NCBI GenBank assembly: GCA_030704615.1
Contig: CM060733.1
Coordinates: 18,662,001 to 18,726,000 of the forward strand
Origin: Takakia lepidozioides
Lineage: Eukaryota; Plantae; Bryophyta
Direction: 5' to 3'
DNA: 64,000 bases
In this document: piece after piece, positions 4,827-44,341 of the stretch
Layout: the number at the start of each line of letters is the position of its first letter
Position numbering within the stretch: the first letter of the stretch is position 1
Translations under genes and position numbers: made by a program
The notes under the pieces: generated by a model
Database searches by the model: none
What the model saw: the letters and a program-made list of their open reading frames with translations, nothing else
Told to the model about the DNA's origin: nothing

Positions 4827-5175
4827 GGAGCTTCAAAGCCAGTGAGCTAAGTTCTGAAAGGGTCATCTGTTGTTGTGTTTAGCTTCTCTCGCATATGTAG
4901 TGACCGAGTCAAATGTTATGGAAAAGTGCGTTTCCAGATTAAAAGATATGTAGCACGTACATGATAATTCCGTGATTGCTGGAAAAATAACTCATTTGGA
5001 AACATACGATTTCTGCATGTGATGACAGAAATATGTAATCATATTTCAAGAATCATGTTACAAAACAGAATCGAGTGCTGAAAGTTCTCACCGCTGATTC
5101 AAATCTGGACTACATGCTACAGTGTTCTGTTCAAGTATTTACAATCTACACAGCTTTGCTAGTGGTACTCTCAAA

Positions 5176-18059: not shown

Positions 18060-18981
18060 ATCGATATCACGGACATAGCCCAGAGGAACTTACCAGGAGT
18101 AAATATCCGAAGTTACCAAGTTATCATGTTATCGGAAGTTACCATGACTTTATCGTGATTTACCATGATCTATTATTACTTACCATGTTACCGAAAGTTT
18201 ACCAAATTACCAAGAGTAACTTGGGAAACTACTCATGAAGCTTCATTTGGAGGAAACTTCTCCATCAAGATACCTCTTGTGTTTAAGGAAGCTGCTCCAT
18301 CAAAAAACCTCCATAGGGAAGTTTCTTAGGTTTAACTAATTCCGGACTTTGAATAAGTCCGGATTTAATGAAAATACGGATCTATTTACTAAATACATAA
18401 TAAAATTTAATACATATACACCTATATATAATAATATCATTTTAATTTAAGTATCTAAACTAATACTGAAAACCATTTTTATATTCAATTTCCACTTTGA
18501 ATGTGAATACAAACTTGTTCATATCACTCTTTTGTAGAAAACATCACTACAATTTTAGTTTTTTCCACTTTGAGTGGCGAAAGATATTGGCATCAACGCA
18601 TTGTCGTTTATATATGGATTTATCGACTTCAGGATTGAACTCAAAGTATTGATTCACATCTACATATACATATAATGACATATCAATATATGAAGCGAGA
18701 CATTTGTTTTGTTTTGTAGCGTCGTTGAGATCTCCCAAACCGCGGGGGCCCAACGCAAGTGCTTGGTGCTGTTGGAAAGCCCTCGATGTGGAATTTCAAG
18801 TACTTTTGGTCGCTGAAAATTTGTGAAAAATAGGCTTTCATGGGACAATGATTGGAGCATCGACATCAAGGGAAAGGTCTCTGGTCCAAATCTGGTTGTA
18901 GGCTTTGTGGAAAAGAAATGCATTTGGACTTAGATGGAAATGATTGGAGCCTCGAGGGGAGATATATCAATAATGAATTGG

Positions 18982-19505
18982 GCCTTGACATTGGAGACGT
19001 AGTGGGATACATAGGAAATTGCATTCGAGCTTAGATGACACTAGACACTTGGCCCTCTACATGGGAGATGCACTTGGATACATGAATAGAATATTGCACT
19101 TGGGCTTAGATAGGCCTCGACAAAAGAGACACACTTGGATACATAGGAAATTGCATTCGGTCTTGGATTTCAAATCTTCACACATGGGCCAACGGCACAA
19201 GCTACACTAAAGGTCGCACTTGGGCCTCGACATAGGAGACGCACTAGGATACATAGGAAATTGCACTCGGTTTTGCGTTCCAATTCTTTAGACATGGGCC
19301 GATGGCACAGGCTACCCTAGAGGTCGCATTTGGGCCTCGACATAGGAAACGCACTGGGATACATAGGAGATCTTGCACTTGGGCTTAGATGACACAAGAC
19401 ACTTGGGCCAACGGCACAAGCTATCCCAGAGGTCGCATCCGGGGTTGGACATAGGAGACGCATTTGGATACATAAGGGACTTAGATGATACTCGACACTT
19501 GGCCA
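18982..19505 (-). repeat. Six-copy imperfect tandem repeat (60-111 bp units); minus-strand core reads PMYPSASPMSRP
   Basis: Core GGCCTCGACATAGGAGACGCACTNGGATACATAGGA at ~18982, 19052, 19112, 19223, 19333 and 19441. Confidence 0.85.
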
Positions 19506-20224
19506 ACGGCTGCCCTAGTCTTTCTTGAATATGACATTTTGTTGATCCAAAGTACCAGATAGAAAAAATATATCCATGTATTACCAAAAATATATTATTC
19601 AAAAAAATGAATCCATGTCTGATAGTGACACATTGTGTTTTGTACCATTGAGACGAATATCCAAAAGAAGCTGAAGATGAACCTCCTTGCAATGATGATT
19701 CGTTTGCAAAACGACTACCTTGCAAGAGATGCATAACTCTACGTCGTCGTTTACTTATACCATGTTTCATTGTCTTCCTGGTGTGCAGACGGTTCAACAT
19801 AATCTGAACATGACTCTCAACACTAGTGGACATGGTTCTATTCTGGCTGTGGTTGAACATATCATCGGAATTCACGCTTGCAACCACACTGCGTGACGTT
19901 GAAGATCCAAATTTGCGGGACTCTGATTCCAACAGTCGAGTTGGGGCCTTCTCTTGTCGAATTATATTTCGCAACTCCTCCTCATGATTCACTGAACAAA
20001 AAGTACACAATGAGACACTTCGAAATCCATGCCGAAGTACCATGGAGCCACGGATGAACAACAATTTAGAAATTTAAAATAATTAAAAAAAAGAATTGTC
20101 ATCATCACCGAAATTTTTTTGGCGTACCAAGATAATCAGGTTGAAGAAGGCGAGGGTGACGAATAGATGGATCAATATATCTCCCGAACCAAATCCAATG
20201 CGGATGGTCACGTTTGATGGAAGG

Positions 20225-21656
20225 TCATGTTCTCTTTACACAGTTTTCACTGACATAGTCCACCACACTAGAGGCTCCAATCATCTTGTGCATGAACGGC
20301 CAAACCGTCATCACCATATCACTCACGTTTTGGTCCATAGAGGCATTTTTTCCTGAAGATAAAACCTTGAAAAGAAGAGGGAAAAACCCTGTATTCTCTG
20401 GGTTCCTTAGTGCTTTGGAAGGCTCATCATCAACTAAGAGAATCTGACCTTGTTTTGCGAATGGCTTGTCTGCAAACTTTATTAAAACTTTGTCAATATT
20501 TTTGAGCACGTACTTCATTTCATACTTGATATAGCCAGACGTAATTGTACAATGCTCAGCCAACCAAATGAAACAAAATTGTTTGATGATCTCCGGTGGA
20601 ACAAAAGCCTCCAGCATTATGAAAAGAACATCTTTCTGGGCGCATGACCAAATAGAGACATGAAAATTTGTCGTCAACAACTTCAAAAATTCAATCACAC
20701 CTGGACGAGGAATTACAAATGGTGTCTCTAGCACTTGAAGTTTTATGCGTCGTCCGGGATATTTAGCTCTCAACAACTCCAACCCACTTGGAGGGGGTCT
20801 GAAGCAGTGTTGGCTGGGTATGGCATCTTGACATGCATATCCGGCGGTTATTTGCCGGTTATACACATGTGCATAACCAGAAAGTGCAGCCCCCGCAGGA
20901 ACCGGCTATGGAAGGGAACCGGAAAAAAAAATCGAGCTTCCTAACCGGCTAGAGAACCGGCATGGTGATTATAAGAATGTTATACCCGGAGCAAGATCCG
21001 GAGCAAATGTGGATGGCGTAGAGGCAGTTCTAGATAATACAAGTGTAAGGGTTAGTGATGGTAGTTATGAAATTACAATGTTGGGGAGATTAGGTGCACA
21101 ACATTAATGAGAATGTCCAAGTAGGAAATTAATTAGTTGGGCATTTGGCATTTGGCTAAGACGATAGTTGTAAGTTGTAAGCTTAGTGTATTAAAGGGGC
21201 AGAGAGATAGATGACAGGGTTGAACGTTTGAACTTTGAACCCGAGACCCACAACTAATACTCTAGTGGCTTATCACCAGGCCATAGCCCTTTTGTGTATA
21301 GTTTTACACACATACACAAAAATGCTAGAAAAAGTAAAAATAAATCAAAGTGGATGAATCCCATAACCGGTACCATGGAACCGGCAATTTTTAAGATGGC
21401 ATAACCGGTAGATTGAGAACCGGACAAAAAAAAAATCCATGTGTTTATTGAGAACCTGTAACCGAGATGTTTTTCAAACCTATTGGTATACCCTGCCCCG
21501 GCCATCCATTTTTTTCAAAGAGTACGCCATAACCGGGACCGGGAGAGGGCTCAAAACATGGTACCCGGCCAACACTGGTCTGAAGCACAAAAGACCGTTG
21601 ACGCTTAATATGACAAGCATTCGTTTTTTCTGACCCGAGATGATTTGGGTGTTTAC
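20225..21656 (-). pseudogene. FCP1/SCP (NIF) HAD phosphatase-like domain #1, disrupted by hAT MITEs
   Basis: With MITE 20805-21577 removed it reads KKRMLVILSVNGLLCFRPPPSG..PFVIPRPGVIEFL..VSIWSCAQ..LKNIDKV..ILLVDDEPSKALRNP. Confidence 0.8.
20805..21577. mobile_element. hAT-type MITE
   Basis: TIR CAGTGTTGGC..GCCAACACTG; 8-bp TSD GTCTGAAG (20797-20804, 21578-21585); subterminal ACCGG repeats. Confidence 0.93.
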
Positions 21657-22524
21657 CAGTGTTGGGTGGTTCTTGCATTTGTGAAAGAACCTTCGGTTCT
21701 GGTTCCACAATTATTTCAAGAGACGGTTCTGGATCCAGTTCCAGTTTTTTTTTATTGAGCCGGTTCCGGTCTGGTTCCGGATCCAACTTTTAAACATGGG
21801 GGCGGTCCCGGTTACCGGTTAGTTGCTGATAAAAACCATCGGTTCCGGTTAGGTTCCGGTTCTATTTTAAGAATATATTTGTTTAATTTAATTAGATTTA
21901 AAATATTTTATCAGTCCGGTAGATTAAATAGCAGTGTATTCACATATTTGAACTAAAATCCAACGATGTTGTTAGTTTTCACTAACACCAAAAAACAAAC
22001 AAAAATACTCTAAATATACTGGTAGAAGAAAATGGGTAAAATTTTTATGGGTTGAAAGTACTATTCAGCTACCTGGCAAGTATTGGCATCTTCAAACATT
22101 TTATTAATGAACTTAGCCAAGATATCAATCATGGAGCTGGAGATTGAACCCAAGGTCATGGCGCTGAAGCATTGAACATAGAATCTCATGGCCTTCAAGC
22201 ATTGAACCCAGGATAGGATCTCAGGAGCTTGAGAGCATTAAAGAAGTTTTGCCCTGGGCCCACCAGCTCTCTAGTGTTATGCCATGTTGCCAAGGCCCAC
22301 CAAGGGTTCAAGAACCAGAACCTGTTTTTATCCCTATGCGCCCCGGTTCTCGGGTTCTCACACCCAGCAGGAACCGCCGGTTTGGTTCTGCGCCGATCCC
22401 CATTGGTAGGTTCCGGTTCCGGGTCAGGTTATGTAGGAATGGGCCCGGTTCCGGTCCGGTTCCGGTTAACTTGAACCTGAACCGGCGGTTAACCTGGGTC
22501 CCGGCGGGTAACCGCCCAACACTG
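21657..22524. mobile_element. hAT-type MITE
   Basis: TIR CAGTGTTGGG..CCCAACACTG; 8-bp TSD GTGTTTAC (21649-21656, 22525-22532); GGTTCC/AACCGG subterminal repeats. Confidence 0.93.
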
Positions 22525-22532
22525 GTGTTTAC

Positions 22533-24900
22533 GCTCTTAGAGGTGGTCACCTAGAAATAAAAATGAAATATCATTAGTACTGCCAAAGAACAGAACATAA
22601 AATAAAAATTCACAAAAGAAATATCACTTCGGACCATATGTCGAAGTGCATTGGGTATCTATAAGAGAGAGGCCCCATTGGCTAGTAACATAGTTCATCT
22701 TCTGGCAACAACATCAAAAGACATAACCAGTGCAACGCCGAAAAGAAAAAAACTCATATTCTTCAACAAAACATATAAAGATAACAAGAAATGAGAATAA
22801 TGCGAAAATATTTGATACCATTTTAGGCAAATCGCTTAAAGACTTCTTTTTTAGGCTTTGTGAGTCTTTTTGAGTCTTTTTGGATATTGGGAGCTGCAAT
22901 GATGATGACAAATCAGCTTCTCGACCTCCATCAGCAGTCGAACACTTCAATTTTGATCTTGGGAAAATATGCCATTTATCTTGAGATATATCCGTTTTCT
23001 CACTTGCATTCGATGACTCGGATCCTGTCGATCTACGAACCGAATTGGAGAATCTTTGAATGGAGATTCCACCAGTATTTTTTGTTGCGGACCTCACTTT
23101 GCATGGTATTTTCTCAGATTGAGAGGATGTTGTAACAAAAGAGTTTTCATTGTGTAGATCTGAAGTTATCCCTCTTGAGACCACGAAACAATCAGACGAA
23201 TGCTCGGACATGCTCGGCTCAACTGAAACATATACAAGGTCATGCTCGCAAAATGAAGTTTTAGTACATTTACCAAAAACATAAAGAACAAACATAAATC
23301 ACATTATGTATGTTATAATAGTAACTTACCTTCGCTTCTCGTACTCTCGGCTTTGAGAGATCCATAAACTTCCCTTGCCTCGCCAAGAAATGTGGATTTA
23401 TCCATTCTAAAATACTACATTTTGGACTTGCAGCAATTGATTCCGAAAGATCCATGAATTGTCCATGCCTTGCCAAGAAGTGTGGATTGATCCACTCCAA
23501 AATACTACGTTTTGGACTCGCAGCTATCGGTAATTCAGATGATGCATCTCCACAGGGCAATTCAGATTGGGGTGGAATACTCTCCATTATAAGTCGTCTT
23601 CATGCACATGGATCCATTCTTGTATGTCCCGATATCTGAAAGAACAAAAATAAAGATACATTCTTAACCATGACATCCAACCAATTCATATGAATGGGGA
23701 TCATGGATAAAACAAACTTCCAAATATACCTCTCTCTCCGAGATCCGTAGTTGATTGTAAGAAGCAGATATAACATCGGTATCTTGAATTGAGCCAATCA
23801 TTGACAATTTCGGAAGACCCGTGCTACAGTTTAGGTCCATCTGTATAGCTTCCAAATTAGCTGATTCCAGTAGTGGAGCAATCTGTGAAAATGCATGAAC
23901 ACTTAATGTCAAAGAAAAAAAAACACAAACATATATGGGAAACTTTGCACCTCATGCCAAAGTGAAATGAAGTGAAGTGAAGATAATGATTGAGATGAGG
24001 CATGCATACAAATCATTGAATCAATTTTGATAGGTTGATTGCAAAAAAATGGGAATGAATGTCAGGAACGAACTTACAATATCGAAAACTTGGTGTAACT
24101 GACTAGGTGAAATATGAGGACGGCGGTCAAAATTTACAAGTCATCTGGTTCTTTTCTTAGAGAAGATAATATGGGCATTGTTATATGTACTTAAGGTCTT
24201 TCCATGCTTTGTGGAACAAGTCCCTACTAATGGTACATTGATTGAGAAGGAAGGACTTCGAAACAGAGGCTGAAGTGACCTCAAGTATAATAAAAAGAGA
24301 AATGTTTGGAGAGTGGTTGGGCTTAATACCTCCATGCCCACTACAGTAGCCATTTCATGCGGAAGTATATGAGCGTGAAAGCTTTGGTTGTCCATATCTG
24401 TAATATGATAACAGTTGTTTTGTGTGATAGTTGGGACCGAATTATCCTTCAACTCCTCGGTGGCCTGCATACAGTCAAGGGATACACACCTAAAACTAAC
24501 ACCATAAAATCTAGAAGATTATGAAGAGACATGGAATGTTTAAATCTTTAAATGAATGTGAAATGCAAGACATGGATGATGGTACCAGTGTATTGTCGAT
24601 GTGGACATGAGTTTGTGGTAACACATTTGATGAACCCATTCTCCCGCTATCATATAATTTTTCATCTCCAATTGATGGATAAGAAAATTGAGCCAATGTT
24701 TTCTCCATAAGCACATTGGAGTCGACTTGAATGCAGTAAGCATCCTCAATGGTGCAACTAAGAGAGACAATGTCTAGCTGAAGACTAATATTCGAAGGAG
24801 TCGGAATCCGTTCGGCGATGTTGTGTTGTGCGACGAAATGCTCCGGAGATTGAATGAATGTTGATTCGATTGCAGTTGGAGTGCTATCAATTGCAGGCTG
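22533..24900 (-). pseudogene. Multi-exon, Ser-rich cargo ORF of unknown function, probably the N-terminal part of the FCP1-like gene #1
   Basis: Open stretches bounded by AG/GT sites (about 22814-23230, 23330-23635, 23730-23885, 24340-24465, 24585-24895); internal duplication IAASPK(R/C)SILEWINPHFLAR. Confidence 0.45.
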
Positions 24901-25210
24901 ACAAGATCCAATGGAAAGAAACGAGGGACCAAATCAATAGCAATTGTGAAATATGATGTCAAAAATATCCATCAAGTGATTAATGCCACACACAAGTAAG
25001 GGAACCCTATTACTTCGGAGATGAGACATTCAAATGGAGTAAATTATATGAATATTTGTAATCTATATATGCATAAAATAGTTTGGTGTTCGAAAACATC
25101 ATATTTTAACATCATTAGTAACCAAATAATCAAAGATAAAAAAAATAAAAAAATGTACACGATAGAGAAGAACAAAGATGAAATTTATTTGATTTTCATA
25201 AATACTATCA

Positions 25211-25920
25211 TCAACGACTTTTCTTGTACGCATTCTTATCAAGATAGTTCATCAGTTTTCGAAACTTTGGATCCTCCATATTCTCTAGTGGAGCCCCGAA
25301 TCTCTCCGAACCAACATATGTGGCAACGGACATTGCTCGCGACAATCCGAGGAGATATTTCTCAAGTTTCTTCAATAAGCATTTGTCCTTTGCAATTGTT
25401 TCAAAGGTTGGAGGGTAAATGCATGACCACGTGGGATTAACAACACACTTTGTTGGACTATCATCAACAAGGAGAGTATTGACCTCATCATATCGACCTG
25501 GGTACTTCTCCCACACTTTCCTACGAGGCTTAAGAAACATAGATGAATGATCTGTTTGATTTTGTCTTGCCTTGTACTAAGGATCAGTATTTGGGGGGCA
25601 GACTATGCAGTCGTTCTGAGTCATAACAAAAACAGGTTGTGGCAGACCTTCAAAAAGTCTCTTAACAATAGGCATGAGGTTTCAGAGCATCATGCAACTC
25701 CAGATAGCTAGATCAAATGAACCACTTAATGAACGCCAGACTTGATCATAACGTTCACGTCAATAGACCAATTTCTTGCCAATAACTAAGGGCTGTTTGA
25801 AATGTTTGCTTGCACTGGAATGTTTCTTCACAACAATACCCTCCTCAATTTTCTCTGTGCGGCAAAGCACACCGTTCAAGTCAAATATAATCAACATTTA
25901 TTTTTGGACACTCTGTATCT
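25211..25920 (-). pseudogene. FCP1/SCP (NIF) HAD phosphatase-like domain #2
   Basis: MLIIFDLNGVLCRT..FDLAIWSCM..MFLKPRRKVWEKY..NTLLVDDSPTKCVVNP..IYPPTF; in-frame stops present. Confidence 0.82.
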
Positions 25921-26330
25921 CGCCAAGAGGTCGCTGAGGCTCATTCTGGTGAAATCAGAGAGTTGCAACCCCGAAACAAACGAGTTAGCAAGAAGATACA
26001 CAATTATTGTAATAACCATTCAATAATACGAAGGCAACTAAGCACAATTATTTATACTGTACATATACACACATGGGTCTGGCTCCGAAATCAAAGAACC
26101 ACAACATAATATAATGTTCTTGAATCATTGGGGCCAATGGACAAAATGTTATAGTTTTGGGTCTCACTGCTATATCAAGAGTGGATAAAAGATGACACTA
26201 AAGAGTTATCCATAAGTGTACGTATCACATTGGGTCATATGATGTAATTAACTTTGTTATGTGTTTGAGAATTCAATACTTCGGAACATGTTTTGAAGTC
26301 CACACATCTAGAAAAATTGTAGAGTGAAGT

Positions 26331-29300
26331 TCATATAGTGTAGTAGCACTTTACCATATTTGGAGATGTTTCACCCTGCTCATTGCTCATCTCCTTGATC
26401 TGCTGCTGTTGAGGTTGATTTGGAATGATTGGGGGAATTCCCTGCTCCTGGAGCCTTTTTTGTGTTATCTCTTGGATCTGTGACAACATCTGCAGTGCAT
26501 GTGCTGCTCCAGTGCTGTGTGTCTGTAGTGACAACGGGCTAAGGACTGCGTTGGAGCTTGATTAACGTTGGTAATCACAGCATGACTTGTCACTTCCACT
26601 TGGGTCTGAGTTGTCTGATGTAACTCTGAGGGTGATTGCGACATAGTGATCTCCCTCGTTTCTTAGAGTTGAACGTAGAACACACAATTATATTCATGAA
26701 GATTAATAGTTACAAAAGATGGATATCAAACATGTAATCAAATAGTTTACCAAGGAATGTACTATTCAAATTTATTGCAGACATTCATATCAACGGTTTT
26801 CAACAATGTCTCATCATCTACCCATTCATAGTGTTTCCCGATCAGAGATGTTACGTACTTCATTCACTTTCCCAGTAGACGATCATTCTCTACGCCTCTT
26901 CGTGGGGATGGGAGATTGAAAATCCAGAGGCCTATCACTAGCTGCAGGAACAAAACCCCTATCATCTTGCTCAGCCTCTACATCATCTAAGGCATTTGTT
27001 TCCTCTGGACGTGGGGATATTAGACCCCTCCCAAGTACCGCACCCATTATTGACTGGACACGATAAGTCGGAATGGCATGTGGGACAGGCTCAAGAAACT
27101 GCACTGTTGGTGGGCGATCACCATCATCATTGTGAAGAGCCACATCCAAGACATCAACAAACTCTGTCATGGTATTTTCCGGGACCTGCACATCAGACGC
27201 AATTGGATCTACCAGATTCACCAGATTGGCCTAATGACCCGTGGCATCGTAATCCAGCATCAGATTCATAGACCCAAGTTTCAAATTCCTCTCAAACGAC
27301 AATAATTTCTCGTTATTTTCCTCGTTATGAGGACTACTAGTACCATCACCAATACCACCAATACTTGGACCTCGGGTGGCACTGTCTTCTGTGATTTGAG
27401 CTGAGACTCTTCTGACCACATCGTCTTGTGGTTCCTTACTATTAGTCATATGTTGATTGTCTTCGTCTGACACGCTGGAATCTGAAACATCCACTATGGG
27501 ATTGATTGTGCTAAGGATAATAGGGTTCAGTGGTGGATCACGCCCTCCATGTTGACTCCCAGCGGTGCTATGTTGGCCTTCAGTTGGACCTTTCCCTTTC
27601 TCTTGAAGCGTTAAGTAACGAAACTCTGCCTCTACCTTCTGTTTGCATACCACCTTTTGGTCGTGGGAGTTGAAGTCAAGAACGCGTACTTGAAGAGCCT
27701 GGTGACATGATGATTAACCGTGTCAGACAAAAGATACAAGCTAGAGACAGTGGAAAAATATTAAACATCCTACGCATGAATTATAAAATGACTTCGGACC
27801 TTGTTTCAAAGTCATCAACTAACAAAAATGAGATAAGTGAAAGAGAGCAAATATATAAAAATAAAGTGAAGAGATATAAAAAAAACTGTAACTCAGAATA
27901 TATTTATAATGACGCTAGCACTTACATGGAGATGACAAGAAAGTGCATGTCCTCCAAAAATATTGACCGCTGCCATTCCTGCCATGCAAAACGAAGAGGC
28001 GATGTACGCATAGGCAGAGCTGCGAAGCTCATGAGTGTAGGACTTCAAATTCAGCTCGCGGTCTGTAAATTCGTCATTTGTACCCCTCAAGACAGTCTGA
28101 ATTGGTTTGACTCTCAGACATCTGTCAATGTGCTCCTCTGGATGCACAAACTCTGTAGATGAGACCGGAAACACATAGTCCAGACAAAGATATGGTTCCG
28201 ACTTGCGTAATGACCCAAACTGGACTTTGTCAATCCTGTATTTCTTCTTGACCTCAAGCCATTTTTCTCTTTTATAGGGATTTGTATTGTCCTTTGTCCG
28301 CAATGGAAAACCAAAAACGTGCATGATGTCGTCAATTATAAACCTCATTTTCTTCATGTGCTCAATATAATTGGTCATGCTCTGAATAGACTTGTCTTGG
28401 CCCTTATAAAGGTGGCGAACAGTCAGCTTGCAACTGAGAAGCTTTTCCGCAATTTTCCCCAACTGCCGCCCAGATAGCCCCTGAATAGTCCTTAGCTGAG
28501 ACCTAGTCATTGGAACCTGTACACCTTTGCAAGGCTTCCCAATGTTATCGATAAGGCGTCCATCCTCCCATTTTTGGAATACCATTTTCCACTTCTCCCA
28601 CACTTCTTCCTCTGATAGAATGAGGACCATGGCCTCCTTCACAGAAATCTGCTCCATGATAACATGGACAGCTTGCATAAAATCCTGCGAGATGAACCAT
28701 ATTGTAAGGACACATCTCTACCATGTTCGATGAGCATTTGAAAAAACATAAGGTCAATGTTTTGCTTCTTACCACCCATTGAGCGCTTTCCGAGTGGCAG
28801 TGGGAATCATTATATTTTTTGGGTATGTTTTGTAGCTCATAAAATAATCTGCAATGTGTCACCTTCTCTGGAAATGTGATATTAAATTTTTGTGCCTTGT
28901 TTGGATCGTTTAGGAGTTTGGATATCTTCACTAGCCTCAGGACATCATTTGACCAAATGATCTTGGCCGGCCAAGTACTGTAGTATGTCTTCAACTCATC
29001 ATTGTCAACCTCATGAATAAGCTCCTGTAACCAACTCTAGAATGTTAGATCATGGACTTCGAAACAGAGGCCGAAGTGGGTGACTCAAAGACTTTGGAGG
29101 GGGAGGGTAACCGTACCTTGGCAGCAATTATGGTGTGTTGCCCACCAATCACAAAGAATTTTGCATTCTTCATCTCGTCCCAAGACTGTGGTTTGTTGGC
29201 CCAAACTTGACCGTCATTAGTATATTGGGGTAATGTAGACGGGATGCTTGGAATCGAGGACTCGGAGCTGGAACAATCTAGCCTTTACTTCATCCTTGTG

Positions 29301-30170
29301 CTTAAATGTTTAGTGGCCGATAAACCATTTGCCTCGGTGCTTGCTCCATGCTCAATATGGGAATATCATGGATTTCGTCAGACCCAAATGGAAACAAATC
29401 CCTGTAAAATTTGTTGAGCTCTTTTTCCATTTGCTCACATTTGTTTTTGTTGAAAATTTCACCAGGTTTTGGCTTCTTGTCGGTTGCAAATACATGGTCG
29501 AGTGGGGCTCTGGACTTTCTCTTAGACTTTGATGGTGTTTTTTCATCATCATCGTCTTCAATGGATGCTTCAGTGGTCGACTTTTTTTTTCGAGTGGTTT
29601 TTTTTTTCCTTTTGAGTTTGTTCGGGCTCCTGCTCATCTCTTTTCTTCTCATTCTCTTTTCCTAGAATAAAGAGGTGTCCCTGAAATCTGGACCACTCCA
29701 AAGTGAAAGTAGACTCACTTGGAACTGTTCCATCGCGTGGGAACTTAAACCCAGATTCCAACAACCCAGCCATGAGGCCTTTGTCCACATTTGTCGTCTT
29801 TGACGCATACCCAATGGTTCGTCCTTTCTGGTCCTCTTCTTGAAGAAATACCACCACATACGGATTATCAACATTAGGCTGGATCTCCACACCCAAAACA
29901 TGTGCGCATTCCATCTCCAAAGCCCCAGGCTCATCTTGTTCCGTATACATGAATCGAAAAACATGGGCCGGAGGATTTCCTCGCATATTAATTCCCCAAG
30001 AGGACACTTTGTCTGATAGATAGAATATTGAGTTATGCTCGGTTTGATATTATGGAGACTGTTCAAAAATAAACTCCCCAGCGATGTCATAAGTCATGAT
30101 GGGTTTGCATGCATCCGGACATTTCTTCCTGCAACATATCAAATAATTCTTTAAGCCACCAAGATTGAAC
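26331..30170 (-). pseudogene. Large multi-exon cargo gene: ParB/Srx-like domain plus degenerate amino-methyltransferase-like C-terminal segment
   Basis: IPILSM..VYRPLN..KPQSWDEMKNAKFFVIGGQHTIIAAK (29117-29158) resembles the ParB GxHR signature. YTHELRSSAYAYIASSFCMAGMAAVNIFGG (~27950-28040) resembles a beta-class N4/N6-MTase motif X/I. GT-AG introns at 29025-29116 and 27699-27925; several frameshifts and stops. Confidence 0.55.
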
Positions 30171-30444
30171 TGAAGGACTTCGAAACAGGGTCCGAAGTTG
30201 TTTCCATGTATTACAAATGGTGGGTACGAAATTCCAACTAATGAAAGAAGAATGAAACACCGTAATAGACACAAGAGTTAGGGGAGATCAAAATTGTTAT
30301 TTTGTGACATATGAAACATTTAATTCGATAATAACATCACATACAACATTGACATGTTGAGTAAACCCTCTCTGCAAATGTGAAAAGGTCTTTATCACTA
30401 ATGATGTACACTGGATGATGGCGACGTGGGTGGTGGCTATGAGT

Positions 30445-30810
30445 ATGGACTTCGTAACAGGGTCCGAAGTCCACCTCGTCAGAGATCTAACAGTAAAAAT
30501 GTTTAAGTTTAAAGTTATTGCGGATATATATGGATGATCTCCAAGTCCCTGTATATACAAAAAATACAAATACTTAACATGAATAAGAACGAGGATTCTA
30601 TAGATGTATCATCTGGTGGGGACTTCGTAACAGGGTCCGAAGTCCACCTCGTCAGAGATCTAACAGTAAAAATGTTAAGTTTAAAGTTATTGCGGATATA
30701 TATGGATGATCTCCAAGTCCCTGTAAATATAAAAAATACAAATACTTAACATGAATATTCAGTAGATGTATCATCTGGTGGGGACTTCGTAACAGGGTCC
30801 GAAGTCCAGA
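30445..30810. repeat. Tandem repeat (~162-173 bp period), each unit containing GGACTTCG-N10-CGAAGTCC
   Basis: Palindromes at 30449, 30622 and 30784, with near-identical flanks. Confidence 0.92.
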
Positions 30811-31139
30811 CAACTCAATTAACGATTGTAGGAACACTACATTTAGATATACAAGAACATTTGAATGCAATCTCTATAATATCTATAGATAGACTTGGAT
30901 ATAGGGTTTGAGGTCCATCACAAAAAGAGAGACAGGTAAACATAGGATCTCAGGACCTCTATAAATAAATATAAATATTTAGTCTGACCAAATTGCACCA
31001 ACTTATATATGAGTTTGCATTATGACATGACAACTATTAGTGATGGCAAGGTGGTGGTTCTGGTTCTCAGAATGGACTTCGTGACAGGGTCCGAAGTCCA
31101 CCGAGTCAGAGATCCGACTTGAAAATTTACTTCATTCCC

Positions 31140-31400
31140 TATATATATATATATATATATATCACATATTATTTTAAATATAATATAATATTTTTATGAA
31201 TTTAATATGAATAAATATGTATTATATAATATATGTACACATAAACAATATATACTGCATATATAATATATAATCTACATTATATATAACAGATAATATT
31301 TTAAAAATATGTATATATATATTTGATATTGATGTACATGATATATATATATATATTATGTTTTTAATATATTTATAAATATATAATTAACATTCTATTT
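31140..31400. repeat. (AT)n-rich low-complexity tract
   Basis: TA dinucleotide runs in a very AT-rich block. Confidence 0.9.
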
Positions 31401-33399
31401 AGAACTAGTATATGAGATCCCAATCCGAATGTTGAATGTGCTCCAAGAGCCATTGATATCTATGTTTCAATATAAATTCGATATGTAGATTTGTTCTTGA
31501 ATTCGGGGTTTCAAGGTTTCAGACCAAATTCATGCCACAACATGTATATGAAACAGTGATCGTGTGCTAAATGCCACACCGTTTCAGACTGTGTTATGAT
31601 ACAGAAAGAATTAACAAACTTGAATCATGTATTTGTTCTGCGGGAGATGTTGTATTTGCTTAGACCATCCGCACTGTGTTCACAAACATAGATATCTGTG
31701 AATATTATTTGTATATGCCATCACCAATGTTGGTGTTCAATGATGGAGAAAGAGCCTCAAGGTATTTGACAAAGAAAAAGAGATTCTGAAGAGAAAGAGG
31801 ATTGAGAGAGGGAGAGAGAGAGAGATAGCACGAACCTAAGCTGAAAATCGTTAAAAAAAATTATAAACAGAGAATTTCTCACCTACTTGAGCTACTGGAG
31901 CCCGTCATGCTTGCGGGCTGGTCCCCGCTCCTCCCTACTCGCAGCTATGTCTGCTGGGGTTCCTGAAACCAAACTTACCCTCCCAAGTACGTTGTAAACA
32001 CCTAGTCCAAGAAATACCAAATCGTCATAGCCAAATCGTGACATCTACAAGAAGAGTCATAGCCCGCAGCTGCTTTGAGGTTGATGGCTACGGCTGCTGG
32101 CCATGGCTGCTGGCCATGGGTTGCTGCTCTTCTAAGACCAAGTTGAACTTCTCAATACCTTGTAAACAACAAGGAAAAACCACATTGTGATACCTACATG
32201 AAGAGCCAAAAACCGCAACTTGCTTCCTCCGGCAAGCTGCTGGCTGCAACTGCTGGTCTAATCTCCTAATACCAACTTGACCCTAACTTAGAAACACCAA
32301 GCTTGACACCGCTCCCAAGTACCTTGTAAACGCCAAGCTCGTGAAATACCAAGCACGCCAAGCACGCCAAACGACACGGTCCAGCCAACTTATTAATCGT
32401 TCGAAACAGGAAGAGTCATCTTTAACCCGCCGCTGGTTTTCATCGTTGTTCGCAGGCTGGTTGCAGCTCGTCTCTATAACATAAGGAACATTCAAACTAA
32501 CACTAACAATCTCTAACAAATAAATTTCATTTGGATCATGACCTGAAACAAAATTTCTCTCTAACGCTAATTCTCCACCCTATAAATCTCTCTAACACTA
32601 ATACTCCAGACTTGCCTTGCAAATCTAAGGTACTCTCCTTGCTCACAAAGATTCTACGCTCACATTTCGCTCGCTCCACGCTCTCACTGTCTCCCTCACA
32701 CAGCCCGATCGAGCAGCTTGGCTGAAAACAAAAACCAAGAGAGAGAGAGAGAGAGAGAGCTCTCTCTTTCACGATATAGACTTGGCAAATCGCTCCTCTT
32801 CCTCACCATCGGATCGGTTGTGGCATTTTTCCTTGGATGGAAAGAATGGATGTAGGGTGGATAGTCCATCCATCCAAATCCATAACTAGCTACTTTGGGG
32901 GCCCTGCAAAATCCATTATGGCGGGTAAGCAGCGCCTCCAAAAACACATTATGGGTCCATTAATGTGAGGATAAAGTGCAGATCTTGCCCCCCTAGTGGT
33001 TTGGGGCTCAATTCCTTTTGGCATGCACTCAATGGACATGGGTCGGGATCGTGCACATTAAGAGGATAAAAAATGGACCTCCACACATCCGCGGATTTTG
33101 ATTGGGCCGTCATCTATACATGGCCGAATTCATCCATCATGACCAATATTTCATCCAGGTTATGGTGAAGTAATCACCATTTTGACCTTGATTAGTTTGA
33201 TTAGTTCAATAAATTCGATCCCCATTAGGCTAGATAAATTTGATTAAATGTGGTATATGCATAAAGATCATATTCTCAAATTCATTTTATTTTCTTCTTT
33301 GAAAACAAAAAGATGAAGTGGCAGAGCTCAAAATTGAGGCTCTTTACAAGGGGCGGGGGAAGTAGGGGAGGGGATAAAATTGACCCTTAGTGACCGATC

Positions 33400-34050
33400 A
33401 GGATTTGAGCCTCAGACCATTGGCGTGACGTGCACCATATACTCAATTGTGTCACTTACCATTATGGCGGGCCCCCACGAGTAGTTATGGCGGACAAGGG
33501 GGTGGCTGCGTGGCGAGTTGAAGGGCATGTGGGGTCTTTCTAAATGTCTGCGCACACGTGGTAGCCTCATAATGGCCCAAATATGGATTCATATCTACTT
33601 TGCATGTGTAGGCCACATGGACACCTCATGATTTGAGCCTCAGACCAGTGGCCTGATGTGCACAATATATTGAATTGTGTCACTTACCATTATGGCGGGC
33701 CCCCACGAGTAGTTATGGCGGACAAGGGGGTGGCTGCGTGGTGAGCTGAAGGGCATGTGGGGTCTTTCTAAATGAATGTGCACACGTGGTAGCCTCATAA
33801 TGGCCCAAATATGGATTCATATCTACTTTGCATATGTAGGCCACATCGACACTTCAGGATTTGAGCCTCAGTGGCCTGATGTGCGCAATATATTGAGTCA
33901 TTTACCATTATGGCACGCCCCCATGAGTAATTATGGTGGACAAGGGCATGACTGCGCACACGTGGTAGCCTCATGTGGCCAAAATCCACATGCGCACATG
34001 TCGTAGCCTCATAATGGCCAAAATCCACTTTGCTTTGCATATGTAGGCTC
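33400..34050. repeat. 228-bp tandem repeat (about 3 units) in the divergent promoter region, each with a CACGTG G-box
   Basis: GATTTGAGCCTCAG at 33402, 33630 and 33858; CACACGTGGTAGCCTCA occurs three times. Confidence 0.9.
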
Positions 34051-34579
34051 TTTCATAATGTGCTCAAGATTGATTGAGCTAAAGGGGAGGTTGCAAACTC
34101 TCATATGTTTGCAACCGTGTGATCATGATTCTCCAACAATCGACGGCTAACATAGGTTGATCCCCGTCATAGCGTCCCCCACCTCTCTTGAAAGAACACG
34201 TTGTGACCTACACCAAACATCCCACATGTATAAATAAGAGGTCTCAGCTCATTTGCTTCTTTTCTTGCTCATCTTGTAATCATCCCGGAGCGCTCTCTCA
34301 TTCCCTCTTTCCACCCCACCCCTCTTCTCTTTGGTTCTCTTCATGGTCTCGCTCATTACTAGTGAGTGCTCTTTCCACCCCACCCTCTCTTCAGAATCGT
34401 CTCTCACTCCCCTCTCTTCAGACATTTCCTCACCCAATTACCCATTTTAAACTCTAGGAAGGTTCGTACCCTGTGCCGAAGTATCGCAGTGAAGAGAGAT
34501 TTAAATCTAGTATTCTTCATATAGTGTGTCATACTTCATCCATATTTATTAATCATCCATATTATTCCATCCATCCATT

Positions 34580-34760
34580 TGTTATCCATCTGGTAGCATT
34601 TCGTAATATGTTTCGAAGTTTAGTTTGAATAAATTTGTTAGTCGATCCATCCGGAGGTACTTCGTAACATGTTTCGAAGTTTGATATGAATATATTTGTT
34701 AGACGATCCATCCAGTGGTACTTCGTAACATGTTTCGAAGTTCAGTGTGAAAGACCTTGT
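34580..34760. repeat. 61-bp tandem repeat (3 units), each with A(C/T)TTCG-N10-CGAAGT
   Basis: Palindromes at 34598, 34659 and 34720. Confidence 0.9.
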
Positions 34761-35008
34761 TAGTTGACGATCCATCCGATGGATTTGTTGGTCATTGGTC
34801 ATTAGTTGTACTGAAGCTGTCACTGTTTGTGAACACTGATTGTCTAGACGAATCTCGAGGTAGGGCATTTGGGATTCCAATATTCACATTAATGTGTCCA
34901 AATATACCATCAAATAAAAATATCTAGTTCGGGAAGTTTACAAGGTGGAAGTTCGGACTGTGTTTCGAAGTCATTGTCATCCGTGAGAAGATTCTTGGTT
35001 CAGTCGAC

Positions 35009-38000
35009 ATGACTCTATTTAAAAGCGGAGATAGGGTGTCTCTATATCCTCGAGGGGGTGGTCAAGTTGTCGCTCTCGGTGATTGTTTAAATGTGTCTGG
35101 TAGTGGATCATGCCATGGCCTCCAGCTTACTTCATCGACAATTAGTGTCATTATTGTCAGCTGCTCAAACACAAATGATAGGACAAATCTCACATATCCT
35201 CATATGGGAGCAGATACGATTGAGGAGGCAATTGGAACGCCGGTTTGCTGGGATGTCCGAGATATTAAGCTTACCCAAGTCGACATTCAAATTGAATCTG
35301 AGTCTGGTGATGGAGTTCCTCGGAGACCTCAGACGGATAAGACAGACATGAAGAAGCTTGAAGAGGCCATGGGTCATCGTGGGAAACAAGATAGTTCTAC
35401 TCATGATTCATTTCCAAATGATCATATTTTGGGAAGAGACAAGTGGAGGAATATGATGTGTTGTCTTTTGGATAGAGAATCTGATTATCTCTATGAAGGG
35501 AGAATTCAAGTGTATTTTCCTGACGAAGTCGAGAGGACCATGTTGGTGTTATCATCACACGAGTTATAGGAGGGGATTCCGGATTGCTCATGTCAATTGT
35601 AAAGTGGCCTCTGAATCGGACAAAGTTGGTAGAGATAGGGATTATGCTCTCTGAGGCTCTTGAGCACTTTTATAGCTCCAACATTGATTCTGCGAATAAT
35701 GATGACTCTGCTCCAGGAATCCAAAAAGGTCCATATCGACTCTTCACCAGAATTGCCAGAGAGCCGGGATTACAGAATTCGAGGAAGTCCAAACGATTGT
35801 TGTCCCTTGAATCTGTTCGACAAGTGAATAGTAAGCCATGTTGTAAGCTAAAGTGTTGCCAACATTTTGATTGGAAAAAAACTCTTGCACTAAGGACAAC
35901 TTTATGGGCGTCAACGTTTGATTCTAGAAGAGAACTTGGATTTGATATTCCAAGGTGTCTTCACATTGTTCAGGGTTGCAAACGGAGGAGCTACATAACA
36001 ATCAGCGAAAAAGCATGGTGGACCATTTTTGGGTTTGGCCGTTCAACATAGATGAAGTACAAGAAGCTGAACAAAGAGGGTGTTATTACATCATTTCATG
36101 GGAACTCGGGGATGAAAAGGCCACGATCAAATACCCTCCAGGCTGAGGGAAACATTCTTTCAATCGTTAATGGGAATAGTGACTGCATGCCCCATAAATT
36201 GAGGAGCATTGGCAATGGGAGACGAGACACTTTGAGGATGCTTCCAGCTGATTTGAATTGGAGGAAAGTTCGTGTTCAGTCCAATGAGGTAAGTTTATTG
36301 AGCTCTCATTTGCTATCATTGACATTCTATATATACTACCACTTCCAACTTCGTTTCGATGTGACTGTCTTTCTCGATTTTCTTTCCCACACTACGTTAT
36401 GTTTCGGGATAATACTTAGAACATGTCGGCTCTATGTGAGTCCACGAGACGTAGGCGCCGGAACTTCTGTTTACTTTCTACCCGTTGGAGTCCCTTGACT
36501 CTTCTCATTCTGTTGTGCACTATTTCGGTACCAGATTAGGTGTTTTATCTCGTGGATTTAAAGTCATTCATCATATTTTATGTATTGATTCATTACCATT
36601 TTGGATGTAGGTCAATGGTATCCTTGGTCTTGCACCTGTTTCTAGTTTGACCATAAGTCGGATTCGAAAATGAGTTTTTTCAAATGTTGAAGTACGTAAG
36701 TGTGGGAGTACTTTTGCAAAATGCGCAGAGTGTGAGATGTTGAAGGATCTTATCAAAAAGTTTGTGAAGGAAAGTGATGATCAACTCAGCCATAAAAAAA
36801 CTTTAGACAAACATTTGAAGCATCAAGAGTCTTGTCGGAGGCTTTATCACAGCTGGAGAAATGAATCCGCTATGATGGGAAATGAATTTCTTTGCATCAT
36901 CCATGATAAAATGGATCACCGAAAGACGACTCTTCCACGTCTATAAACCACAAACAAGATGATATCAGGATTGGGTCAACTTCCAATTTCTTTGACTGGG
37001 ATGGTAACTCATGGACACGGAGATGGAGCATATGCCCAGTACTCGGTCGATTTGTGGCCTGGAGATCCGAATTTCACTATTGGTTCTGTTGCAAGATGTC
37101 TCCGCCAACTTGAGAAACCTACTTGCAAAAAATCAAGGAATATTTTGACCATCCATTCCAAAATGATTTTTTTGAGCAATTAATGTGGGGAAAGTCCAGA
37201 TGCGTAGATGCGTTGAAGCCGTTACATCCAGAAGCCCAAAAGGGACCGCGGCCATTGCCTCAGAGATTATATTTGCAGATGGATAATTGTGTGAAGGACA
37301 ACAAGAATAGGTGGATGTTGGCATTTCTTTCTTTGCTCACAACAAGGGGTGTATTCAAAGAAGTTCAATTGGGATTTCTGATGGTTGGTCATACGCACGA
37401 AGATATAGATGGATTTTTCAGCTATCTTTCAAAAAAATTGAAAGAGAATAGCACTTATGTCCTCTCAGATTTAATGAGACATTTCATGGTTTCTCAGGAA
37501 TTGCAGTTTATTCCACAAATCATTCAAGAAGTTCCTGACTTCAAGGAGTTTGTACATGGTCATATTATTGATGGAAAGGAGGCTCTTGTTGGAGCTACTT
37601 ATATGCATGTTTTTGGGTTTTACATGGATTCAGAAAATTGGCCTGTCATGCAATACAAGAAATCCGCGACCGATTCTGATTGGCTTCCAAAACAAGGTGC
37701 AATTAAAATGTGGAAAACTCTTGACGATAGATCTCCTTCACTCCCCGTGGGTGAGCCCAAGTCAGTGCCCATGAGACCAATTTGGGGAGACAACGAAGAT
37801 GCGGTGCAGAAGCAATCTATCATAAAATCCGGACTAAAAAAATATCTGGAGTTTTGGAGAAAGGGAATGAATATTGATGAGCACTATGGAACTGTCATGA
37901 AAAAGTATGATCAATATTGGACTAATATTCTGGAGGAGCTAGAGCTTCCACTTGAGGACCCAAAAGATACTGGTATTCTAGAAGGATTTTGGCCCTCTAC

Positions 38001-38562
38001 AAAATGGCGAGAAAGTCACATGAGAGATGGATTTAATGCTCACTCTGACGAATCAAGTGATCATGAAGTTGAGGAAATTGTTCCTTATTGTGGGCCAAGG
38101 TGTGATCGTCCAAAATAAGGTCTAAATCCGTACAAAGACATTGAAAAATGATTTTTTATCCTTGTTCGCCCTCATGATCCTAATACATATCCAGTTTGGT
38201 TGGGAATGCCATCATCCGATGTAGTTCGTGATAGAAAGAATATCAATTACAAAAAGGTCTTTGTTGAGTGGTGGAGACCAAAGAAGGGAGGTAATCCATC
38301 TGATTCGGAAAGGTACAGGGATTGTTGGATAAAGACTTGGGAATTCAACCCCGAAGATCCTCCACAGTGGATCCATGTTGACACCGTTGTTTGGACCATG
38401 CCCGCGAGAAAGAATACTACGAGGTCAAGCACAAAGCGGATAAGTGTCAAAGAGGCAGAGAAAGCGAAAGCTAATATCGATAAAGCGAATTTCCAATGCG
38501 ACGCGGAAACAAGTTCTTTGCGTAATTTCAAACAATCTGAAGACATTAACCATGATGTATGA
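35009..38562 (+). pseudogene. Sola-like (DUF7869-type) DDE transposase, decayed, intron 36289-36610
   Basis: CCKLKCC, HGNSG, FAKCAEC, CIIHDKMD, LYLQMDNCVKDNKNRW and FLMVGHTHEDIDGFFS; GT-AG intron; multiple stops and frameshifts. The superfamily assignment rests on recalled motifs. Confidence 0.8.
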
Positions 38563-39179
38563 TATGTTAACAATGACACATTAACGTCAATTCAATCAAA
38601 GTTTGATTTTAATAATAAGATTTGTGTCACCAATTTTTTTTTTATCAGATTCAGTAGTTGTATGTTTATTTATTTTTATCTTGATGTTGTTTTTGCTACA
38701 ATGTGATAGTGATTTGAAGGGTATGACATATCATTTTGTACTTTGGAAATCTTCCTCAAGTGTTAATTAATTATTGAAACAACCATAAAATATTGTTTTA
38801 GGCATTATGTGTATATTAATTGTAGGAATTATGATAGGTGAACTCAACATATCATTATAGTGGGCATGATAAGATGGACATGTTTGTATTTAACGGGCGT
38901 CATTATTAGAAATGTAGGTAAGACTTCTGCCCTAGTGGATAAGTTATATATATACGTGTATGTTGCGAATTATTTTTGTCAAGAACACACATTGGTGTAA
39001 CTAATTAATTGTATGAACGACAAGAAAACATTGTATTGGGCATTAGGTGGTTAGTGTGTGCATACGATCTGAGCATCGGTAAATATGTATTGACAATATC
39101 TATCAATAATACACTAATCAATTATATAACATGGTGGATATAATGTACTAATATGCTAATAAGTGTGTGTTGACAATTA

Positions 39180-39500
39180 TCTTTTGAAGGTTTACTAATG
39201 TATATTTAAATATGTTTTTTTGTTTTTACATCAGGGTTTAGGGTTTCTAGGGTATTGGTACTAGATTAGGGCACTGTAACTTATTTCATGAATAGAAATG
39301 TTTGTTCCTTTTGAAGCTTACTAATATGTTACCTTAAATCTATTAAATTTCTCTTCACATCACATATAGGGTTTAGGGTTTCTAGGATATTATGTACTAT
39401 TATTAGTGCACTCTAAATAAAATGAGAAATTGAAAAGCTTACTAATATTTACTCAAATCTGTTTTTATTCTTATTACATTATAGTTAGGGTTATGTTGAC
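39180..39500. repeat. ~125-bp subterminal repeats with telomere-like AGGGTTTAGGGTTT
   Basis: AAG(G/C)TT(T)ACTAAT at ~39187, 39314 and 39435; AGGGTTTAGGGTTT at 39233 and 39368. Confidence 0.7.
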
Positions 39501-40339
39501 AAATGATGTCAATTCTGCATAAAAGATTTCATGAAGTTAACATCAATGAATATTCTATATTATCAAAGTTTTCAATGCAATTCACTTTGATATATTGGAC
39601 TATGATATCATGCAAATATTATAGAGTCCGACGGTATGTCTTTCGTTAAGAGTCTTGACTCTTTCTCTCTCCTTGTGTGAAGGGCTTTATAGGGGACCCA
39701 TTTATCAAAGTTGAACACGTGAATTAAATTGACTTCATTGACTAAACTAAATAGCATTGTCATCAAATTTGTTCCAAAGATTTCTCATTTGTATTACAAA
39801 CTTTCAAGAATTAGAATTTTTAATAGTTCAACTTCAATTTCGAAGTGAAATAATTAAATATAATTATTTCACATGTTATTTGTTAAATTAAATTGTCACA
39901 TATACTAAGTTTGGTCCGGAATTAACGAAAAAATCCGGAATTAGTTAAAATTGAGTTTAGACTTCTTAGTAGCCAGTATATATAGGAGGCGAGATTGGAC
40001 ACTCTTCAATCTCGCCAACACCAGTTCAAGCTACTCTTGTTTCCAGTTTCCAGTACTCTAGCCCAGTTTCCAGTACTCTAGCCCAGTTTCCAGTATCTGG
40101 TACTCCAGTCCAGTTTCCAGCAATCCAGTATTCTAGTCGTGTTCCAATATCTTGTACTCTTGTTCATTGTTATAAAGATCGTCTTGATTCATATTTACTC
40201 ATCGTGCATACGGCCACGCCGACCTTGACTTCTTGTCTAGTCTTGTACCTCTAGTCTGATATCTTGTTTGTGTTTAGTCATGTTCTTGTCCTTGACAGTT
40301 TAGCGAGACTCAAGCTTGTTCCTTAGTTAGTTAAGTTGG

Positions 40340-43300: not shown

Positions 43301-43765
43301 TCGTGTGTGGCTTCTTCGACGGGATATACAAACCTCGCGACCATCAAAGAAGTTGGATTATCAACGCCTGGGACCATTCAAAATTATTCGACAAATAAAT
43401 CCGGTCAGTTTTTGGCTTGAACTCCCACGAAGTATACGCATCCATCCAGTCTTTTATGTTTCATTATTGGAGTTGTATCATCCATCGAATATTCCATGGA
43501 GAGTCTCCGTACCACCTCCGCCAATCGAAGTCAATCAGGAAATTGAGTATGAAGTCGACGAAGTCCTAGACTCTCGCATCAAGTATTGTCAGATGCATTG
43601 GCGAGGTTGGATGAAGGTTCTCACGTTCGTTCGCTGATGTGAGTCAAGAACGAAGCGCCAAATACTTGACAAGTACCATTCGCCAGATTTTGGATTTTCT
43701 CCAACTTTAAGCAAGTCCAAGATTTCACCGCTTCTCGAGGAACTCGGTGCTAGAGGAGGGGGTGA
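40340..43765 (+). pseudogene. gypsy gag-pol pseudogene (gag, protease, RT, RNase H, integrase C-terminus, chromodomain)
   Basis: gag LSGTALSW..LRQG, YCGKDDHIALNCP; protease ALLYSGAS; [29 protein letters not shown]; RNase [22 protein letters not shown]; GPFKI; chromodomain EYEVDEVLDSR. Many stops, and the integrase core is missing. Confidence 0.92.
42913..43135 (-). repeat. Inverted LTR (U3) fragment replacing the integrase core
   Basis: Reverse complement matches LTR positions ~43830-44020 and carries one extra internal sub-repeat. Confidence 0.85.
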
Positions 43766-44341
43766 TGTCATAGACATAGCCCAGAGAAACTTACCAGGAG
43801 TAAATACCACAAGTTACCAAGTTACCATGACTTACCATGATTTATCATAATCTATATGATTTACCATTACTTACCATGTTATCGGAAGTTTACCAAATTA
43901 CCAAGAGTAACTTGGGAAACTGCTCATGAAGCTTCCTTTGGAGGAAACTTCTCCATCAAGATACCTCTTTTGTTTAAGGAAGCTTCTCCATCAAGAAACC
44001 TCCATAGGGGAAGCTTCTTATGAGACTTCTTAGTAGCCAGTATATATAAGAGGCGAGACTGGACACTCTTCAATCTTGCCAATACCAGTTCAAACTACTT
44101 TTGTTTCCAGTTTCCAGTACTCTAGCCCAGTTTCCAGTATCTGATACTCCAGTCCAGTTTCCAGCAATCTAGTATTCAAGTCGTGTTCCAATATCTTGTA
44201 CTCTTGTTCATTGTTATAAAGATCGTCTTGATTCCTATTTACTCATCGTGCATACGGCCACGCCGACCTTGATTTCTTGTCTAGTCTTGTACCTCTAGTC
44301 TGATCTCTTGTTTGAGTTTAGTCATGTTCTTGTCTTTGACA
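43766..44341 (+). repeat. 3' LTR of chromovirus (TG...CA, 576 bp)
   Basis: Matches 18065-18329 followed by 39957-40297. Confidence 0.95.

Follow-up and report, generated by a model that had tools for sequence, protein, structure and literature searches.

Two studies published in 2025 have raised the possibility that large DNA transposons encode proteins able to recognise their own family. In Ectocarpus, the 21.5-kb element Sola1-1_Ec32 carries, on the opposite strand, a gene for a protein of 1104 amino acids with ParB-like and N4C/N6A DNA methyltransferase domains, and the authors suggest that proteins of this kind attach to the transposon that encodes them and modify it (PMC12477816, Genome Biol 2025). 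Fusions of ParB and methyltransferase domains are also found in bacteria (Iyer, Abhiman and Aravind 2011, PMID 21507349, as cited in passages of PMC12477816). In Bostrychia, PAG3 combines ParB with a 2-oxoglutarate (2OG) oxygenase and is adjoined by tandem inverted-repeat arrays, and the comparison with VANDAL transposons was made explicitly (bioRxiv 10.1101/2025.02.11.637652; Curr Biol 2025); its ParB-like domain was detected with an HHpred E-value of 0.29 (bioRxiv 10.1101/2025.02.11.637652). In the passages of the algal transposon literature cited here, VANDAL with its VANC protein is the only functionally characterised case named. Sola1 has also been catalogued for Physcomitrella (Repbase; PMC9033089, Table 1). 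Here, we analyse a stretch of 64,000 nucleotides from the moss Takakia lepidozioides (contig CM060733.1, positions 18,662,001 to 18,726,000), referred to below as the window and numbered from its first nucleotide. We propose, with a probability of about 0.6, that positions 18330-39956 hold one decayed giant Sola-like element with an accessory arm of ParB-like and NIF-type phosphatase-like domains and a palindrome of its own, read by a protein that the element encodes. An earlier note on this DNA had considered the combination to be undescribed, which Sola1-1_Ec32 (PMC12477816) and PAG3 with its inverted-repeat arrays (bioRxiv 10.1101/2025.02.11.637652) contradict: the design had already been proposed for brown and red algae in 2025, the binding idea being a proposal there as well.

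The limits of the element were obtained from the long terminal repeat (LTR) that it interrupts, and its outer features are the following.

18330 to 39956, plus strand: whole element, 21,627 bp, delimited by the LTR halves and the gag, protease, reverse transcriptase and integrase SH3 sequences of the interrupted Ty3/gypsy host
18326 to 18329, no strand: left target-site duplication TTAG, 4 bp, from the junction compared with the intact LTR copy at 43980-44060
39957 to 39960, no strand: right target-site duplication TTAG, 4 bp, from the reading of the junction
18331 to 18363, plus strand: left terminal inverted repeat TTTAACTAATTCCGGA (18331-18346) with a degenerate second copy (18348-18363)
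39915 to 39949, minus strand: right terminal inverted repeat (39934-39949) with a degenerate second copy (39915-39930)
18981 to 19500, no strand: subterminal tandem repeats with units of about 110 bp, from a repeat search

Positions 18063-18328 and 39959-40297 jointly match one unbroken LTR copy at 43764-44341, with 87-90% identity. Between the host LTRs, the region at 40.4-43.6 kb encodes gag, protease, a partial reverse transcriptase and integrase SH3, which identifies the host as a Ty3/gypsy element with a shortened interior; it is the upstream LTR of this element that received the insertion. With a slash at each limit, the left junction reads ...tttcTTAG/g-TTTAACTAATTCCGGA... and the right one ...TCCGGAATTAGTTAAA-attgagt/TTAGacttc..., so that 7 extra bases separate the right repeat from the duplication. 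The TTAG duplication holds provided that a 3-bp indel separates the two LTR copies, the intact one being cttcttaTGAgacttc. The terminal inverted repeats match perfectly over 16 bp and at 95% over 20 bp. Across the window, TTTAACTAATTCCGGA occurs at the two ends and nowhere else, even with up to 2 mismatches allowed, and the interior of the element holds no copy at up to 3 mismatches. We rejected the reading that a further element of this family is nested inside, since the interior lacks the end motif at that threshold; nor was there any sign of a second pair of ends. The single 21.6-kb insertion claimed in the earlier note was recovered with the same limits, and the 16-bp inverted repeats that it had placed at the ends are present there.

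Two further observations concern the host. The span between its LTRs is only about 3.5 kb (40300-43760), as in an internally deleted or rearranged copy, and it contains an inverted partial LTR copy at 42970-43135, the counterpart of which is located at 18144-18310.

The coding sequence by which we assign the element to a transposon lineage is found in its right half.

35536 to 38475, plus strand: Sola-like (DUF7869) transposase gene, broken, from Pfam and similarity to relatives

The open reading frame (ORF) at 37123-38118 matches Pfam DUF7869 with an E-value of 3.9e-39, and the full extent of the gene was drawn from its similarity to six related loci (L001, L002, L005-L008). The gene is interrupted by in-frame stops at 36049, 36671 and 36944 and by a frame change near 37115. 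Its translation contains IIHDKMD, LQMDNC and GHTHEDID, motifs of catalytic type among which the triad was assigned by eye only. We found 76 homologues, the best of them 44-66% identical, in ENA/JGI assembly contigs, liverworts (Riccia, Calypogeia), molluscs and a coral; one of the related loci, L008, also bears a plant xyloglucan fucosyltransferase (XG_FTase) gene. DUF7869 is presumably the Sola1-type transposase; the papers found in a literature search do not mention DUF7869. The plus-strand transposase of the earlier note is well supported by the Pfam match, and its assignment to Sola is presumptive. Terminal inverted repeats are present, and the Sola superfamily is reported by Bao and colleagues (2009) to make a 4-bp target-site duplication, with which the duplication TTAG agrees.

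A second, partial transposase copy is present in one relative (L002:12977-13756), where it lies inverted, 2-3 kb beyond the main DUF7869 gene on its downstream side. Its counterparts in the window are 36013-36264 and 36812-37114, on the opposite strand, and it represents a further element that is either nested or arranged head to head.

The two halves of the element are connected by a palindrome that recurs along most of its length, in the following places.

34598 to 34971, no strand: four palindromes directly before the transposase, three of them within 61-bp repeat units, closest to the full ACTTCGTAACATGTTTCGAAGT
30177 to 31097, no strand: five palindromes in repeats of about 170 bp, just upstream of the ParB-like gene
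20017 to 29077, no strand: six single palindromes among the cargo coding pieces, at 20017, 22626, 24255, 26278, 27791 and 29056
33398 to 34050, no strand: tandem repeats with 228-bp units, between the divergent genes

The motif ACTTCG-N10-CGAAGT has 15 matches in the window at up to 1 mismatch, when 0.06 would be expected by chance, and every one of them falls within 20017-34971. When up to 2 mismatches are allowed, 21 of the 24 matches in the window fall inside the element, including those at 18626, 36341 and 39825. The best copies (34659, 34720) reveal a full palindrome of 22 bp, ACTTCGTAACA/TGTTTCGAAGT, and the family-specific site of the element can be written as ACTTCGWAACATGTTWCGAAGT. 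Its half-sites are 11 bp apart, a spacing that would suit a dimeric DNA-binding protein. The site at 29056 is placed in the short gap between the exon with the ParB motif and the next predicted exon. CpG transitions account for 8 of the 15 arm mismatches, as expected for an old methylated copy. The earlier note had described a repeat-rich region between diverging units and a single palindrome family recurring over the element; we found the former at 30.1-35.0 kb, and the latter does link the transposase promoter with the cargo region.

Related loci have palindromes of other sequences. In L003, about 28 copies of GATGGACGGGCCGTCCATC are packed around the ParB-like and NIF genes, while L001 and L005 share the 20-bp palindrome CATCTGGAGATCTCCAGATG (7-8 copies) and L008 has 8 copies of another 20-bp palindrome, TATCGGGTGATCACCCGATA. 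The sequence thus differs among related families, and a motif common to the front of the transposase and to the cargo therefore argues that both halves belong to one co-evolved element.

This argues strongly against a chance nest, in which a short transposase-only Sola-like element would stand nested in or adjacent to an unrelated cargo-bearing element: transposase-only relatives of about 5-6 kb do exist (L001, L005) and no external locus examined has both parts, but the single pair of ends and single 4-bp duplication, the end motif missing from the interior, the 22-bp palindrome shared by the transposase front (34598-34971) and the cargo when families differ in theirs, and a published Sola1 element of the same size and layout leave this explanation with very little probability, the least of those considered here.

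Three transposase-only relatives have a palindrome inside the transposase gene, between its N-terminal and catalytic parts (L001:8527, L001:9567, L005:9492, L008:4549), for which the only candidate counterpart in the window is the 2-mismatch site at 36341. L017, a cargo-only contig of 35 kb, has the 18-bp palindrome GCCTAGTGGCCACTAGGC three times (4754-4771, 4972-4989 and 15187-15204), twice upstream of the ParB-like gene and once upstream of the NIF exon. It may be that family's own site, three copies being too few to judge.

The accessory arm occupies the left half of the element and is encoded entirely on the minus strand.

26334 to 30049, minus strand: ParB-like accessory gene with several predicted exons, from its motif, a weak DUF6551 match and homologues
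25214 to 25960, minus strand: NIF/FCP1-like domain 1, in one frame, with motif I IIFDLNGVL, a pseudogene
20228 to 21700, minus strand: NIF/FCP1-like domain 2, with a predicted main exon (20228-20905) and a motif-I exon (LVILSVNGLL, near 21614)

The ParB-like gene contains the motif VIGGQHTIIAAK at about 29120-29155, a conserved middle domain at 28208-28591 and a low-complexity tail at 26334-27713. The window, L003, L012/13 and L017 share the conserved pattern (F/Y/L)(V/I)I(G/N)GGQH(T/I)xxA, and its GGQH(T/I)xxA box stands at the position of the ParB GxxRxxA or DndB DGQHR box; the flanking pattern RPLN..., followed by ...WPAKIIW..., looks ParB-like by eye. Since the domain is split over three pieces, and profile searches were run on each piece separately, the piecemeal search is probably the reason for the weak ParB profile scores. 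Only the 79-residue piece with FFVIGGQHTIIAAK gave a hint, its best Pfam match being DUF6551 at a non-significant E-value of 0.12. A language-model lookup with L003:1-417 placed it nearest to DUF3723 (0.93), ParB_N (0.92) and DUF6551 (0.90), and an exhaustive HMMER search with the 274-residue piece at 27896-28717 found the relatives P0077 (E-value 2.3e-9) and P0080 (E-value 2.7e-4). Two other proteins, P0078 and P0079, which came from a search of representative sequences, are bacterial surface or repeat proteins and were discarded as spurious, and the phmmer matches to Pol gamma B, fascin and ribosomal L4 in PDB were regarded as noise. A homologous-protein search with 27893-28678 (minus strand) and L003:1-417 found nothing. 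Pfam returned no match for 27896-28717, 27234-27713, 26886-27230 or P0080, so that neither the N4/N6 DNA methyltransferase profile (PF01555) nor its DPPY or FxGxG motifs were recovered.

The phosphatase-like cargo that the earlier note had placed on the minus strand consists of two NIF/FCP1-like domains, one of them above the curated Pfam cut-off. Domain 2 reaches 37.6 bits against a cut-off of 21.8 (E-value 2.3e-9) and is homologous to L012 9026-9388 and L017 15719-15889. Domain 1 scores 19.9 bits (E-value 6e-4), just under the same cut-off, and its reading frame holds four stops, of which three fall within the domain itself; the NIF homologue in L003 scores 28.2 bits. Motif I is FDLNGVL in domain 1, LSVNGLL in domain 2 and FDMNGLL in L003, as compared with the canonical DxDx(T/V). 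The catalytic motif is thus missing from all three, each of which has Asn in place of the second Asp, and the phosphatase chemistry is therefore altered or lost.

The two exons of domain 2 are separated from the next palindrome by a GC-rich low-complexity stretch (21200-22600), in which several reading frames are open on either strand, with translations of the PEPEP and GSGSG type.

The arrangement of the arm can be compared with that in other genomes. L003 repeats the arrangement of the window on a single strand, with the YVIGGQHTVLA exon first, then P0080 and then the NIF ORF. Nine further cargo loci (L010-L018) were found by scanning JGI metagenome contigs, and the order GGQH exon, middle domain, NIF domain on one strand is shared by L003, L012 and L017/L018, with 28-54% amino-acid identity. 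An order kept at this level of identity indicates that the accessory arm is an ancient module under conservation, which chance did not assemble.

The copy in the window is dead: there are stops in the transposase and in NIF domain 1, a frame change in the former, and CpG transitions in the palindromes, in agreement with the decay reported in the earlier note. The locus is best explained as follows. A giant DNA transposon of the cut-and-paste type, with a DUF7869 transposase, inserted into the Ty3/gypsy LTR and produced the TTAG duplication. Its two predicted transcription units, the transposase on the plus strand and the accessory arm on the minus strand, diverge from a 5-kb repeat-rich region. 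The arm encodes a GGQH domain of probable ParB/DndB type, a conserved middle domain and, as HAD domains, the two NIF/FCP1-like ones (with DLNG and SVNG in place of DxDxT). A dimeric DNA-binding protein encoded by the element would read the palindromes in front of both units and between the cargo exons, the first candidate for this role being the ParB-like accessory protein and the second the N-terminal part of the transposase. By this means the family would identify its own copies and regulate or shield their expression, and the phosphatase-like domains would serve as effector or adaptor.

Several observations weigh against this proposal. None of the external loci examined combines transposase and cargo: in the nine cargo loci from the metagenome scan, the upstream sequence on the contigs (3-9 kb) contains no transposase, and all six transposase loci lack the GGQH motif and NIF similarity within 7-10 kb. 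Pfam searches of the ORFs flanking the transposase-only relatives showed no alternative accessory gene. As for the ParB-like label, no exon has a significant match in Pfam, NCBIfam or PDB, and the same applies to L003:1-417; the language-model lookup of the window piece at 28548-29036 gave no usable match, and the AlphaFold2 models were unusable, with pLDDT values of 40 (L003:1-417) and 33 (P0080, with an alignment of 3 rows). Furthermore, the Arg of the ParB GxxRxxA or DGQHR box is replaced by Thr or Ile, and no methyltransferase-like tail is detectable in this copy. Of the ParB-like protein of the earlier note, then, the conserved GGQH(T/I)xxA motif, the DUF6551 match at an E-value of 0.12 and the lookup with L003 stand in favour, whereas a significant hidden Markov model (HMM) match and a usable fold are missing. 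We still consider the ParB-like nature of the accessory protein probable, and much of this estimate comes from the published algal cases, in which the domain was likewise only weakly detected.

A further objection, which bears on the proposed reader, is that L001, L005 and L008 hold palindromes of their own without a ParB motif in their 7-10 kb flanks. The ParB-like gene is thus not needed in cis, which weakens the proposed step in which a ParB-like factor would recognise the palindromes. Judging from their distribution, either the N-terminal part of the transposase or an accessory protein acting in trans could bind them, which makes this N-terminal part and the ParB-like domain candidates alike. 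This leads to the alternative that survives best, although we regard it as unlikely: the palindromes would be cis elements of the Sola-like lineage, bound either by a host factor or, in autoregulation or synapsis, by the N-terminal domain of the transposase, and the ParB-like/NIF arm would be a later passenger. The placement of the sites in the transposase-only relatives fits such a role, with arrays upstream of the transposase, one site between its N-terminal and catalytic parts and one downstream, as does the finding that the cargo-only loci L010-L016 lack a recurrent palindrome and L017 has only three. However, the L003 palindromes crowd around the ParB-like and NIF genes, and 11 of the 15 sites in the window are within or directly upstream of the cargo arm. 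In addition, the algal inverted-repeat arrays adjoin ParB-domain accessory genes across unrelated transposase superfamilies, and the transposase-only copies could be deletion derivatives that are served in trans.

A more far-reaching variant, which we find rather improbable, is that family-specific palindromes of roughly 20-22 bp, found even in elements with a transposase alone, constitute a general and so far undescribed internal operator system of the whole DUF7869/Sola-like lineage, the ParB-like/NIF arm being an add-on that would tether to them an altered module resembling the phosphatases of the RNA polymerase II (Pol II) carboxy-terminal domain (CTD). If this were true, the element would encode a sequence-targeted regulator of its own transcription, unlike the methyltransferase and oxygenase effectors of the algal elements.

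Less probable again, and only slightly more credible than a chance nest, is a Pack-type capture, according to which the ParB-like and NIF-like sequences are fragments of host genes with no role for the element. The cargo-only loci without a nearby transposase (L010-L018) could indeed be host genes, and both NIF domains have a non-canonical catalytic motif, one of them being full of stops. Nevertheless, the order and orientation of the module are kept over several genomes at an identity of only 28-54%, and the several paralogous, partly broken copies per sample among L010-L018 are more in keeping with a mobile family than with one host gene. The non-coding parts of the cargo bear the element's own palindrome, moreover, and ParB-domain accessory genes are recurrent in algal transposons.

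Outside the element and its host, the window contains a pair of 126-bp direct repeats (491-616 and 4701-4826) that are 98% identical and 4.2 kb apart; they are probably the LTRs of another short retroelement.

If a protein encoded by the element does read the palindromes, DNA transposons would have a second route for marking or controlling their own copies, and a bacterial partition-type DNA-binding domain would have been re-used in plant mobile DNA. With respect to bacterial ParB-parS, a dimeric protein would be expected to read a palindrome of 16-22 bp, and the motif stands at the position of the GxxRxxA or DGQHR box; here, however, the Arg is missing (GGQHT or GGQHI), there is no ParB_N HMM match and no ParA partner, and the gene is eukaryotic, presumably spliced and borne by a transposon. 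The likeness to VANDAL21 and VANC in Arabidopsis, whose accessory protein picks out members of its family by short motifs in their non-coding DNA, is by analogy only, as VANC is not ParB-like, has no sequence relationship to the protein described here, and its motifs are short non-palindromic repeats.

The algal systems are closer. Their layout is matched here by a transposase and an opposite-strand ParB-like gene (a weak label) inside one pair of ends, and by an array of family-specific inverted repeats beside the accessory gene, namely the five at 30177-31097; L003 has the same arrangement with another palindrome. The Plavaka elements of red algae, which belong to the EnSpm/CACTA lineage, resemble this locus in the weakly detected N-terminal ParB-like domain of PAG3, in the adjoining inverted repeats and in the self-binding proposed by the authors. 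They differ in their transposase superfamily, in having a 2OG-dependent oxygenase and not a NIF-like effector, and in that their repeats are described as tandem arrays by the gene, whereas the sites here extend over 15-21 kb. Sola1-1_Ec32, compared here by its published description, is likewise a giant Sola-type transposon with an opposite-strand accessory gene of ParB type. In contrast to it, the element in the window has a land-plant-type host, no methyltransferase domain detectable in this copy, and two NIF/FCP1-like domains, where the gene passage of PMC12477816 names only ParB-like and DNA methyltransferase domains. Sola-type transposons were already known in mosses, as the Physcomitrella entry shows. 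What is new here is an effector of NIF type with an altered active site, together with exact ends, a target-site duplication and the full 22-bp site, the order from ParB-like to NIF domains conserved in other genomes (L003, L012, L017/18), and transposase-only relatives that keep palindromes of their own. Thus, the window contributes to the group first proposed from algae a land-plant-type member with a different, NIF/FCP1-like effector.

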